This document shows positions 17,450 to 55,009 of a stretch of DNA of 64,000 bases, piece by piece. Position 1 is the first letter of the stretch. The number at the start of each line of letters is the position of its first letter. Position numbers and translations under genes: made by a program. Source of the DNA: Bugula neritina (lineage: Eukaryota > Animalia > Bryozoa); the NCBI GenBank assembly GCA_964035545.1, contig OZ037771.1:4413628-4477627 (forward strand), given 5' to 3'. The notes below the pieces were generated by a model. It searched no databases. It saw nothing but the letters and a program-made list of their open reading frames with translations, and was not told the DNA's origin.

Positions 17450-20400
17450 ATGAAGCATCAAAAGAAGCTGCATTTGCTATCTACCTTTTTAGTGCTCAAC
17501 TGTAAGTCCATACTTTCTTCTACTTTGAAATTTTTTTTTACTGCCAATTTATAAAAATAAATCATAAATTCAAATTTTATATTTTTCTTATTTTTAAAAT
17601 CTCAGTAAAATTTTGTGCAATTACACTTTGCGTGTTTTTGCATCTAATTTTCAAAACCTATACTCACAATTTTATTGCTACTTTCTATATAAGAATTTTT
17701 ATGTATATATAGAAAATTGACTTGACATACTTAGTTCAACTTGACACATTTAACCTTGCCCGAGGTGTTTAACTTAACTAGACACCCTTGACTTAGCTTT
17801 AGGAAAATGCAAAATTTATACTGATTCCAAAATTTTCCCTAAATAGCTGAAATTTTGATAAGAGATGGTATAATTTTTTAGCACAATTTTTGGTGTTTCC
17901 TATCATAGGACAGCATTAAGACTCATGGATAATTTACCTCAAACAAAGATATTGTATGTGCAGGATGCCATTAGTATAATAAATATAAGTGCCATTGTTG
18001 TATAGATTTTTCACATTTTATTCTCTTTACATAAGTTCTACATATACCTGCTAAATACCTGTAGAAGATCTGTTGCACACGATAATGCAATTATTATGAA
18101 CATGTTGTTCACTGTTTAACGCCTGTCATTAAATATATTATTTTAAAATATTATATCAAAAAGATTAAATAAATTCTAATAATTAAAAATAATAACTTGA
18201 CAAACGAAAACTTCTGACTCTTACTTTAAAAAGCACATTTTGCATTTCTCACTATTTTGGGAATATGCTTATATTGGTTAAAGATAAATTATTTGTTTTC
18301 ATATAACTTTGTTTAATGATATTTTTAGAGCATATGATTTGTTTTTATAGTTACTGTATAATATAGATTGATATATATTTTAGTGCTCATAGGAGACGTA
18401 ACGTCAGTGCTATGTACTGGTAAACCAGAGCTGCGGTTTGGCAGAGATGTTGGCTGCCTTTCCATAGCGTATAATCAAAATCTCTTGAAAACACCTTCTT
18501 GTCTGTCAGCTGAACGAGACAGCACATCACAAACATGCTCAACTGAAGGCTCCTGTACTGTGAGTAAACATCCTGTCATAATATCAATGGACATAGAAAA
18601 TATTAGATTATGATATTGTTACTGTGAAAGATTTATGTCAATTAACATAATAATGTGCCTAGTAAAATATTTCAAATCCTCCAAAAATAATGTTTAGAAC
18701 CTTTGAACAACTGGGATGGTCTTATTATTACAGGTACAACAGTGCTTTAATACAATTACGGAAATCAAATACTGTTTGATTTAGTTTTATTTTTGCAGAC
18801 TCATTTGGTTAACTGAAAATGTATAAGGGTCGTTTTACTTAATTTAGTACACACTGGAAATCTCCAGTTTTTAGCTATTTTTTACAATTTAGCTGCTAAT
18901 GAACACGAGTTTTGTCCCAAAACTAGTAAAATGTGAATGAACACACCTAAATAATCAAGATACGTCTTAATTTTGCATGATTTCCCACGTTTTTTCTAAT
19001 TATTCAGCCACTTTTGATTTCGGAGAGTTATGGTTTTTTCATAGCACTCTGCAATCAAAAGTAGCTGAATAATTAGAAAAAAACATGGGAAAGTAAGCAA
19101 AATTAAGAAGAACTTTGATTATTTAGGTGTATTCATTTGTATTTTACTAGTTTTGGGCAAAAGCCCTTGTTCATTAGCAGCTAATTTGTGAAAAATAGCT
19201 AAAAACTGGAGATTTCCAGTGTGTACAAAATAAGTAAAATGACTCATAATGATTATAATTTACAGGAAATCAACGTACGGCTCGTTGAAGGGCAATTTCA
19301 GGAAACTGAGAACATGGTGTGGGCTTTTACTGGCTGCTTTGAACAAACTATGGAAGTAGAAGTCTGTAGAGAGAGACCTGTGTGTAAGTATTTTAATATA
19401 TATATATATATATAATATATATATATATATATATATATATATATATATATATATATATATATATATATATATATATATATATAATTTATTACATAATATT
19501 CATTATATATAAAGAATGATGAGGCTAGTTGAAGCAAAATTGCGTTTTGAAAAAATTTAGTTCTATTCTAAAGACCAACACCATGAAACTCAATCATATG
19601 TTGCTGTCTTTGTCCATTCTAAGCTTTTCTAATCTGGTCTCCTGTTTGGTCCTCCTGTGTGTAATTTTACACAATTCTGAAAACATTTGCAGAATTTTTA
19701 AATTCCACTTTATGACTCACATTTTTATTTGTTCTAATATATGTGGTTTGATTTATAATTATATTGACATCAAAAAAGTTTAATTAGTAGAAAAACTCAT
19801 GCATAAAAATTTGTGTGCCAATTTATAAAGAACGAAGTGAAAATAATTAGTGAGCGAAATGTACCTGGTTCAATTCGCCTCACTGGCTACAAACTATTGT
19901 CAATATCTGCTGTGAATGGGATATCTCTGCAACTTAAGGTCATTGCCCAACTAGCCCCACTCTTTCTTACATATATTATTTAATGGCAAGAAATTATAAT
20001 AAAAAATCACTTACACCAATGTTTTAAATAGCTGGATATGACGATGGATAAGATGTAATCAGTTAATTAATTACAGTGGTTGTTAAATAAGAATGCCTCA
20101 CTTGAAAGTTAAAATTATAAATTATATGTGAAAAAAATTAGGAATAGGAAAACTAATTTAAACTATTAATTTAATTTAAATTCCAACTGCCTGTATGGTG
20201 CATATAATTGCAGAAATACATTACATGTCATTGCTTTACTAATAAAATAATGTATTGAATTTTTCTTCAATAGATACCACAACAACTACTACAACAACAA
20301 CTACTACAACAACGCCAACCACTACAACAACGCCAACTACAACAACAACACCAACTACTACAACAACACCAACCACTACAACAACACCAACCACTACAAC

Positions 20401-52300: not shown

Positions 52301-55009
52301 CTACAACAACAACACCAACTACTACAACAACCCCAACCACTACAACAACTCCAACTACAACAACAACCCCAACTACTACAACAACAGCAACTACCACAAC
52401 AACACCAACCACTACAACAACACCAACTACCACAACAACCCCAACCACTACAACAACACCAACTACTACAACAACCCCAACTACTACAACAACCCCAACT
52501 ACCACAACAACACCAACTACAACAACAACACCAACCACTACAACAACCCCAACTACAACAACAACACCAACCACTACAACAACACCAACCACTACAACAA
52601 CACCAACTACCACAACAACCCCAACCACTACAACAACACCAACTACTACAACAACCCCAACTACTACAACAACCCCAACTACCACAACAACACCAACTAC
52701 AACAACAACACCAACCACTACAACAACCCCAACTACAACAACAACACCAACCACTACAACAACACCAACCACTACAACAACACCAACTACCACAACAACC
52801 CCAACCACTACAACAACACCAACTACTACAACAACCCCAACTACTACAACAACCCCAACTACCACAACAACACCAACTACAACAACAACGCCAACTACAA
52901 CAACAACACCAACCACTACAACAACCCCAACTACAACAACAACACCAACCACTACAACAACACCAACCACTACAACAACCCCAACTACTACAACAACAGC
53001 AACTACTACAACAACCCCAACTACTACAACAACCCCAACCACTACAACAACAGCAACTACAACAACAACACCAACTACCACAACAACCCCAACTACAACA
53101 ACAACACCAACTACAACAACAACCCCAACCACTACAACAACAGCAACTACCACAACAACCCCAACCACTACAACAACAGCAACTACAACCACAACACCAA
53201 CTACTACAACAACAGCAACTACTACAACAACAGCAACTACTACAACAACACCAACTACTACAACAACCTCAACTACTACAACAACCCCAACCACTACAAC
53301 AACAGCAACTACAACAACAACACCAACTACTACAACAACCTCAACTACTACAGCAACCCCAACTACTACAACAACACCAACTACAACCACAACACCAACT
53401 ACTACAACAACCCCAACTACTACAACAACAGCAACTACTACAACAACCTCAACTACTACAACAACCCCAACCACTACAACAACACCAACCACTACAACAA
53501 CACCAACTACTACAACAACGCCAACTACAACAACAACACCAACCACCACAACAACGCCAAGTACCACTACAACAACAACGCCATCTACAACAACACCAAC
53601 CACCACAACAACGCCAAGTACCACTACAACAACAACGCCAACTACCACCACAGGTAACAATACAATGACTAATAAATTTTATAAACAATATATAGTTGAA
53701 AAATATGTTTTATGAGAAATAGTGCCCATCAAATTAAAAGTAGTTCAAGTGGGAATGATAATAACAAAAAGTTTTTGGTAACTTTTAGAGCCACTGCCAG
53801 AGTTTGACGGATGTTTCACCGGAAATGTAACCTTTACGAGCTCAAATTGTTCAACTCAGTCTGTCATCACTACATTGACTAATGGCACCTTAAATATCGC
53901 TGTGGAATTCCAAGTAGTTGGTTGCTGCTCAGAAGACAACTGCCAACCCGAAGAAGGCAAAGCTGGTAAATATTTCAACTGTTTTACTGCTGTTGATGTT
54001 CTCTGAAACAGTCATTCAAAAGAAAGCTTTGAATGCTTTTTATTGTTTCATCAGACAGTATAGCTCCCACAATATTGTTTGAACAAATATCTACCTATAC
54101 CTATAAATAGAAGGATTAAAGGCCATGCATGCAGTTGCAGTAGCAGAGTAGCACAGGGGTATATAGTATGATATTTAGCTTACTTTCTAGCAACACCTCA
54201 TTTATGTTTTGATTTGGTTTTTAGGCGAAAGAGCGTGTAATTATGGCACAGGCGATGATGTATCGCAAACCTACTGCCCTGATGCGTGTTATACCCTTGT
54301 GTCCATTGACGAAAACTCTGTTGAAGTGTATGTTAAGAGTATATCGTATATCCTTTAAACATTTCTTTTACAAAGCTTTCATCATTTTACTATACCAAAC
54401 ATTAGTAACAAGTTTTATAATATATAGCAGTTGTTTTGCCATGTCAAGCACATCATGCAAGAAATATTATAAAATAGTATTGTGGTCTCACTAACCCATT
54501 GCATTGCAGTAATTGAAACTTTAATTTTAGAGCGAAACATGGCTGTCTAATCGATGTCGCTTCACCAGGAACAGCATTTACGGATGTCACAGAATGTACT
54601 GACAAATATAAAGCTGGAAGCTGTCTGAATGCGAACAATGAGGAGGTATGCGTATACAAAAACTATATATTTAAAATAACTGAGTCAGTTTTATAATAGT
54701 TTTGCATACATCCAGAGTTTTGGCTATTTTTTGTGACTTATCTTATATTTATTAACCTTTGCTGTTTAACATTTCTAAATTTTTTCTCTATTTTATCTAG
54801 AAGTTTCAAAATGCCTTTAATAAATAACTTTTTGCATACTACTATTTTCGCAGGAATGCTTTACATGCTGTACCACTGATAACTGCAACACGAAAAACAC
54901 CAAAGCAGAAATTTTTGGCACTGAAGATACTGATGAGGACAGCAGCTCTGTAGCGGTTATTCCGTCTCTTCTCCTATTGTCGATCTCCTACCTAATTGGT
55001 CAACAGTAA
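49321..55009 (+). CDS. GPI-anchored Ly6/uPAR-like mucin protein, paralogue 3, about 819 aa
   Basis: Exons 49321-49372, 50763-50938, 51480-51597, 52091-53653, 53789-53965, 54225-54327, 54531-54645, 54854-55009; mucin exon 521 codons with P-to-A/S variants. Confidence 0.9.

Follow-up and report, generated by a model that had tools for sequence, protein, structure and literature searches.

Mucin domains usually occur as free stalks or as spacers that separate other domains, and three-finger domains of the Ly6/uPAR (LU) type are much-studied small disulfide scaffolds. The described architecture nearest to the one examined here is that of C4.4A (LYPD3), TEX101, CD177 and uPAR, which have a signal peptide, at least two LU domains, a glycosylphosphatidylinositol (GPI) anchor and, in C4.4A, a Ser/Thr/Pro-rich region that links the last LU domain to the anchor as a stalk. 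GPIHBP1 is a GPI-anchored protein with one LU domain, a long disordered acidic segment N-terminal to that domain and no mucin. Membrane-tethered mucins (MUC1-type, the TIM family and the GPI mucins of trypanosomes) have Pro/Thr repeats of variable number in one large exon and are free-ended or form stalks between domains. It has been reported that the Ser/Thr/Pro-rich region of C4.4A is O-glycosylated (PMC7053344). In this study, we analysed a stretch of 64,000 nucleotides (nt) from the bryozoan Bugula neritina (the window), in which three tandem genes at 17450-55009 encode GPI-type proteins with two LU-like domains. The best explanation of the data is that a (PTTTTT)n mucin probably sits within the first LU domain, the two halves of which would fold together and hold the mucin as a closed loop.

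The bryozoan proteins differ from C4.4A in that their mucin interrupts the coding of the first LU domain and is 10-20 times larger than the flanking half-domains. Sequence homology of their domains to LU proteins of the C4.4A type was not detected in Pfam and PDB sequence searches. They resemble the membrane-tethered mucins in the single large exon of Pro/Thr repeats, the variable repeat number and the predicted surface tethering; unlike in those mucins, the repeat returns both ends to one small disulfide-rich domain, and there is neither a SEA domain nor a transmembrane helix. The sequence-only reading, an earlier annotation of this DNA, had known of no protein with such a topology, and we found none in the literature searched. 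Full-text searches of limited coverage, which asked for a mucin-like insertion in LU or three-finger proteins and for Ly6 or mucin proteins of bryozoans, gave nothing comparable. A 2026 survey of invertebrate LU proteins lists for Bryozoa only 'LU' and 'receptor kinase' types and leaves mucin unmentioned. Provisionally, the architecture is undescribed; its parts (LU domains, GPI signal and Pro/Thr/Ser repeat) are familiar.

The window belongs to contig C7 of a 216-Mb assembly and is AT-rich animal DNA of about 33% GC. Tandem Repeats Finder located arrays of an 18-nt unit at 20280-21435, 32750-34533 and 52099-53636. Each array is translated in one + frame as (PTTTTT)n with no stops, 80-84% Thr and 14-16% Pro; with 62-76 PTTTTT units per exon, it is a long Pro/Thr/Ser-rich tandem repeat of the mucin kind. 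Cys-rich open stretches surround all three arrays in identical order. Gene models were built from sequence reading, DNA alignment of the copies and a phase check. Three intact genes (copies A, B and C) were obtained, each with eight exons (E0-E7), GT-AG at all borders, a coding length divisible by 3 and no internal stops (Table 1). The limits given by the sequence-only reading were exact, since copy A begins at 17450 with the ATG of its signal-peptide exon and copy C ends at 55009 with its stop codon.

E0 codes for Met and most of the signal peptide, the N-terminus being MKHQKK followed by a hydrophobic core (by inspection). E1 has five Cys, including C-STEGS-C (C-x5-C). E2 has a hairpin-like stretch ending in xGC (F-T/A-G-C) and then C-x9-C, which adds two Cys and brings the mature total before the mucin to seven. 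E4 has five Cys in the arrangement GC-x11-C-x24-CC-SEDN-C, and E5-E7 code for a 10-Cys domain 2 ending in CC-TTDN-CN. The C-terminus is an acidic Ser-rich spacer with a hydrophobic tail of 11-13 residues before the stop, kept across all paralogs (by inspection). The earlier count of seven Cys before the mucin, five after it and then ten thus held without change in copies A, B and C, and the proposed tandem family of two-domain proteins was borne out by three intact genes with conserved signal peptide and tail, which are predicted to be GPI-anchored. The non-mucin exons are 87-100% identical between the copies, and the main difference is repeat number (393, 521 or 602 residues); the copies are recent tandem duplicates.

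Splicing was examined with contigs from two RNA runs (X1 and X2, labelled 'symbiont metagenome') and one DNA run (X3), which were compared with the repeat-free region 49290-52160. A 507-nt RNA contig, found in two runs, joined E0, E1, E2 and the mucin exon at 49372>50763 and 50938>51480 (both GT..AG) and at 51597>mucin start. None of the E0-E1-E2-mucin joints was found in DNA run X3. The variants of the RNA contig and its mucin start fit a copy-A-like allele, and the mucin start was identical to that of copy A E3. These results indicate that E0-E1-E2-E3 are spliced as modelled and that the family is expressed. An in-frame ATG (MMC...) at 50720 was rejected as the start of copy C; it is absent from copies A and B, and in the RNA an exon further upstream is spliced to 50763.

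E3 is symmetric (phase 1-1) and varies about 15-fold in length among paralogs, as might be expected if the mucin exon were an optional cassette, with a plain two-LU-domain GPI protein as the main product and the mucin form as a minor isoform. However, if the exons were joined directly, the final base of E2 would form TAG with the first two bases of E4 in all three copies (19383/21587, 32256/34685 and 51597/53789), and the mucin-skipped protein would therefore be truncated before E4, domain 2 and the anchor signal. The sole RNA contig found continues from E2 into the mucin exon, and the exon is present in both RefSeq models from the bryozoan Watersipora. The sequence-only reading had proposed a profile search for mucin-less homologues; every family member found has the mucin exon. 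We consider an optional cassette highly improbable. A minor skipped and truncated isoform may occur at a rare level that the contigs would miss. In the Watersipora gene, the equivalent E2/E4 junction appears open (GCT, reconstructed by eye).

We searched for relatives of these genes. Six-frame genome searches with E4 and E1 found six further paralogs in the same genome (L001-L006), nine genes in all. L006 lies on C7, 3.6 kb upstream of the window, which brings the cluster on that contig to four family genes or more; the other five are on contig C5 (at about 249-256, 290-297, 299-305, 371-376 and 431-438 kb). All six have E0, E1, E2, a Thr/Pro/Ser/Ala-rich exon, E4, domain 2 and the tail, and family members are 21-45% identical to each other at the protein level. 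Their mucin exons range from about 40 to 550 residues. In L001, L003 and L005 they are non-repetitive, with about 40-80 residues; L002 has PTTAA-type repeats over about 78 residues, L006 has PTTAG repeats over about 180 residues, and the exon of L004 reaches about 520 residues. An in-frame stop lies inside the E2-like exon of L002 (L002:1176-1313), which may be a decaying gene or pseudogene. An E4 profile search of 1.84 billion representative proteins gave 21 matches. Two of them were full-length RefSeq proteins from Watersipora subatra, P0013 (368 aa) and P0005 (606 aa, XP_067949754.1), with a part order identical to that of the window genes; the eight exons recur in the P0013 gene, where the mucin alone occupies one of them, between split codons. 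Most other matches were exon-sized open reading frames (ORFs) of marine metagenomes. P0002, P0010, P0012, P0014 and P0016-P0021 appear spurious, with multiple matches each, limited to positions 8-35 of the E4 profile. Two large repeat proteins that were inspected, P0014 and P0016, are Cys-poor and bacterial-looking, and the large-protein matches look like chance similarity of beta-strand repeats (GTYTGTITIS...NVTLT) with no kinship. When P0013 was used as the query of a homologue search, whole or as residues 186-368, no protein other than P0013 came back; the word index is overwhelmed by words from the mucin, and the family has diverged too far.

All 12+10 Cys columns and the part order are kept in the 11 genes (nine from Bugula and two from Watersipora), except that L005 has no Cys9. 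The recurrence of these columns in nine paralogs and two Watersipora proteins excludes chance, and the odd Cys counts on each side of the mucin, first read from the window alone, are conserved family-wide. P0001, a metagenomic ORF near-identical to L005, retains Cys9. Older paralogs differ in repeat chemistry and recent copies in repeat number, which suggests selection for a loop at this site with its size free to vary. So far, the gene family has been found in bryozoans only.

We then determined whether the parts on both sides of the mucin resemble one three-finger domain. Natural Watersipora relatives were folded with AlphaFold2, domain 1 through full-length P0013 (alignment A12) and domain 2 alone (A14). 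The family alignment was made with mafft --addfragments. Full-length and fragment MAFFT alignments were scrambled, as the xGC and CC-x4-C pieces attract each other, and only the clean A12 and A14 were folded. The P0013 model had a mean predicted local distance difference test score (pLDDT) of 56.7, with block means of 69-89 at residues 61-111 (end of E1 and E2) and 79-93 at residues 181-240 (E4), and values below 40 in the mucin (112-174); the confident parts, 61-111 and 175-243, lie on either side of it. Low-pLDDT stretches were dropped, and the models were compared with 48,161 PDB representatives using VIA-align, which is independent of Foldseek. For domain 1, ranks 1-11 were three-finger proteins only, aligned over 64-90 residues with model ranges of 21-24..241-246 that span both mucin flanks. 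The best match was GPIHBP1 (Z 7.2, 80/83 residues, root-mean-square deviation (rmsd) 3.4, model range 23..246), followed by CD177, TEX101 and Lypd6b (Z 6.0-6.6) and by ALK1, TbRII, PSCA, BMPR1B, Lynx1 and kappa-bungarotoxin (Z 4.7-5.0); many toxins, CD59, uPAR and C4.4A ranked lower. The domain 2 model of a Watersipora homologue had a pLDDT of 75. Its 33 best VIA-align rows were all three-finger proteins, with CD177 and GPIHBP1 at the top (Z 6.9, rmsd 2.4-3.0), and TEX101 and CD177 were among the best matches to both domains. Since the same proteins were found at the same Z level for both, the split domain 1 looks as LU-like as the uninterrupted domain 2. The earlier expectation of two three-finger folds, with the mucin lying inside the first, was thus supported on homologue models, in which domain 1 is formed in one polypeptide by E1 and E2 with E4.

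The ectodomains of activin, BMP and TGF-beta receptors (ALK1, TbRII, BMPR1B and ActRIIB) matched both domains at Z 4.6-5.9. The xGC that closes finger II and a double disulfide near CC-x4-CN, as in domain 2, are ActRII-like features, which we take as a lead only. The bryozoan proteins differ from these receptors: they end in a GPI-type tail, lack a transmembrane helix and a kinase, and have no match to Pfam Activin_recp. In Cys pattern, domain 2 conforms to LU domains, with ten Cys and a CC-x4-CN that is invariant in 9/9 paralogs. The CC-x4-C of domain 1 is also invariant (with one extra residue in two paralogs); the next residue is Q, K, E, S or R, and the conserved Asn was never found there. 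Domain 1 does not form the contiguous stretch of about 60-100 residues of an LU domain, as 393, 602 or 521 residues of (PTTTTT)n lie between Cys7 and Cys8. In hhalign comparisons, the CC-x4-C end of E4 aligned to that of domain 2. The possibility that domain 1 arose by duplication of domain 2 was left unsupported, because no homology beyond CC-x4-C was detected between the halves of domain 1 and domain 2.

That last result is one of several that weigh against the proposed split domain. Pfam searches (UPAR_LY6, Toxin_TOLIP, Activin_recp, QVR and others) at E values up to 10 gave no match, whether the query was a single exon, a full-length Watersipora protein or part of one, and a PDB sequence search with domain 2 gave none either; the E4 profile had only weak PDB matches (E 0.16-8), several of them long-chain neurotoxins. 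LU membership of both domains is a matter of fold and Cys pattern only. The folded model is that of a Watersipora homologue, from a shallow alignment that mostly covers E4, and its finger I (residues 31-61) has a pLDDT below 50. A Z of about 7 is in the range that VIA-align calls 'middling', and Foldseek E values for the P0013 model were 2 or worse, its top matches nonetheless being GPIHBP1 and TbRII. RNA-confirmed joints are confined to E0-E3 (region 49290-52160). The Cys pairing is argued from parity and spacing only, and the loss of Cys9 from L005 (L005:3726-3863) means that it is not invariant. O-glycosylation and GPI anchoring are predictions from sequence only.

Several of these points would also fit a different view, in which the 7-Cys and 5-Cys segments form two small modules of their own, joined by the mucin as an ordinary stalk, and the composite three-finger look is a modelling artefact: there is no match to an LU sequence profile, the Z and Foldseek scores are low, the alignment is shallow, and C2 domains and other beta-sandwiches appear from VIA-align rank 12. 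However, the 11 three-finger matches ranked above these span both segments, and the same proteins are at the top for domain 2. The N-half alone resembled the first two thirds of LU domains. By language-model features in the ESM Atlas, it was near the DUF753, Quiver, UPAR_LY6/toxin and Activin_recp clusters (scores 0.76-0.78, a lead only), and its own ESM Atlas model was near the uPAR/Ly6, Bouncer and PLA2-inhibitor clusters (TM 0.43-0.50 over 57-66 residues). E4 alone resembled no domain in the ESM Atlas, as expected if this fragment folds only together with the N-half. Across the 11 genes, odd Cys numbers are retained on either side of the mucin. We regard separate modules as quite unlikely.

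We examined where in the fold the mucin enters. Canonical LU disulfides are 1-5, 2-3, 4-6, 7-8 and 9-10, and the connector between fingers II and III has 3-6 residues. The C-x5-C followed by a hairpin of about 24 residues ending in 'GC' matches LU Cys4-Cys5, finger II and Cys6. On this register, Cys1, Cys4, Cys5 and Cys6 would correspond to the four canonical Cys at the N-terminus, Cys2-Cys3 to an additional pair in finger I of the kind seen in CD59-type domains, and Cys11-Cys12 to the terminal CC-x4-C loop. Cys7 lies 9 residues after Cys6 and 6 before the mucin, and Cys8 lies 8 residues after it. Two pairings of the remaining Cys may be considered. In the first, a Cys7-Cys8 bond would staple the loop at its base and finger III would be closed by Cys9-Cys10, the insertion then lying in the finger II-III connector. 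In the second, Cys7-Cys10 would pair and Cys8-Cys9 would form a small loop inside finger III, where the insertion would then lie; this pairing resembles the activin-receptor pattern. The P0013 model has extra strands at 102-108 and 187-193, which end at Cys7 and begin at Cys8, respectively, and these fit the first option, with a fourth, mucin-tipped hairpin in the connector. The sequence-only reading had placed the mucin in finger III. Its position between Cys7 and Cys8 stands, and by spacing and model strands the connector fits at least as well as finger III. The conserved 7+5 parity implies that exactly one disulfide would cross the mucin in both options, and a bridging disulfide would be the simplest reading of the odd split.

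The odd counts are equally compatible with halves that complement each other between molecules, the N-half pairing with a neighbour's E4 by domain swapping or through intermolecular disulfides, so that chains or nets would form a membrane-tethered gel coat. A very long flexible linker sets no geometric constraint on such pairing, GPI proteins are densely clustered, and E4, which has no fold of its own, must pair with something. In contrast, the monomer model assembles both halves of one chain with high pLDDT, and paralogs with loops of 40-80 residues keep the same design, which favours intramolecular closure. These results make pairing between molecules unlikely.

We therefore return to the closed intramolecular loop as the probable architecture. 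Each gene would encode two LU domains, the membrane-distal one split and the other ordinary, preceded by a signal peptide and followed by a GPI-attachment signal. E1 and E2 would give fingers I and II (seven Cys), E4 would give finger III and the closing CC-x4-C knot (five Cys), and both coded parts would fold together as one domain. The mucin, presumably heavily O-glycosylated judging from its composition, would leave and re-enter this small domain as a closed loop, held shut by the beta-sheet of the domain and by a single disulfide that links Cys7 with Cys8 or Cys10. Each molecule would then display a mucin hairpin on a two-domain GPI-anchored pedestal, and copies with different loop lengths may build a looped glycocalyx brush on surface cells of the animal. 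Our confidence is much less for function than for architecture. We infer a lubricating, anti-adhesive or barrier surface coat as the most economical function. Tentatively, and with rather less assurance than for the split domain, the three-finger domain may be seen as a disulfide-locked clasp that holds both ends of an O-glycosylated chain of 400-600 residues. The surface would then consist of closed loops, or of a domain-swapped tethered network if halves pair between molecules, with loop length tuned by tandem copies.

A mucin up to about 7 times as long as a whole LU domain, threaded through one domain, would show how much insertion the fold tolerates. It would also provide a natural 'clasp' for the display of glycopolymer loops and a testable model of looped versus linear glycocalyx brushes. 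If this is true, lubrication and interpenetration by a looped brush should be unlike those of linear mucins, and one protease cut would not shed the loop. The family may bear on bryozoan surface biology, including fouling, larval settlement and contact with symbionts.

Table 1. Coordinates of the three window genes and of other features (positions in the window unless another locus is named; codon counts of E3 include split junction codons)
Feature	Position	Strand	Description
Copy A, gene	17450-22828	+	691 aa; coding sequence 2076 nt
Copy A E0	17450..17501	+	ATG and most of signal peptide, ends in phase 1; homologous copy C E0 joined to E1 in RNA
Copy A E1	18384..18559	+	End of signal peptide and Cys1-5 of domain 1
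Copy A E2	19266..19383	+	Finger-II-like hairpin ending in xGC, then C-x9-C (Cys6-7), ends in phase 1
Copy A E3, mucin	20274..21452	+	1179 nt, 393 codons, (PTTTTT)n, phase 1-1; start identical to mucin part of RNA contig
Copy A E4	21587..21763	+	Cys8-12 (GC...C...GCCSEDNC), phase 1-1
Copy A E5, E6, E7	22031-22133, 22349-22463, 22673-22828	+	10-Cys domain 2, GPI-type tail, TAA stop
Copy B, gene	29991-40999	+	900 aa; coding sequence 2703 nt
Copy B E0	29991..30042	+	Signal peptide
Copy B E1	31423..31598	+	Cys1-5
Copy B E2	32139..32256	+	Cys6-7
Copy B E3, mucin	32745..34550	+	1806 nt, 602 codons, phase 1-1
Copy B E4	34685..34861	+	Cys8-12
Copy B E5, E6, E7	40232-40334, 40536-40650, 40844-40999	+	Domain 2, GPI-type tail
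Copy C, gene	49321-55009	+	819 aa; coding sequence 2460 nt
Copy C E0	49321..49372	+	Signal peptide; joined to E1 in RNA
Copy C E1	50763..50938	+	Cys1-5; joined to E0 and E2 in RNA
Copy C E2	51480..51597	+	Cys6-7; joined in RNA to E1 and to mucin exon start ATACC...
Copy C E3, mucin	52091..53653	+	1563 nt, 521 codons, phase 1-1
Copy C E4	53789..53965	+	Cys8-12, ends in CCSEDNC
Copy C E5, E6, E7	54225-54327, 54531-54645, 54854-55009	+	Domain 2, GPI-type tail, TAA stop
LTR (long terminal repeat) retrotransposon, BEL/Pao-like	35036..40065	+	In E4/E5 intron of copy B; outside the protein
L006	G000:C7:4404000-4413627, genes ~L006:3029-6867		Diverged member, (PTTAG)n mucin exon of ~180 residues

The retrotransposon in copy B has direct repeats at 35036-35335 and 39455-39754 that are 100% identical over at least 300 nt, with a spacing of 4419 nt. 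Its ORF at 36458-39340 (960 aa, gag, BEL/Pao-like) matched Pfam DUF1759 (E 1e-11), with weak DUF5641 and zinc-knuckle matches. Identical 14-nt arrays are present at 35564-35646 and 39983-40065, and a 53-nt tandem array at 35712-35978. The element is young, and the exons of copy B are undisturbed. In the E0/E1 intron of copy C, two short segments at 50250-50540 had contig depths of up to 12,800 and 33,000, compared with about 100-500 nearby, in both RNA and DNA runs, which points to a high-copy transcribed repeat element. An Rfam search of the window gave no matches. Microsatellites flank the genes at 996-1327, 14285-14656, 17281-17402, 28087-28426 and 49076-49267, including (AGAC)83, (TG)175 and several (TA)n, and (TA)n arrays lie directly upstream of every E0 exon. 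On the - strand, 2.5 kb downstream of the cluster, an exon-sized ORF at 57557-57835 matched Pfam Galactosyl_T (GT31 beta-1,3-galactosyltransferase family, E 2e-12). Its position near the mucin genes may be relevant to O-glycan extension or may be a coincidence.

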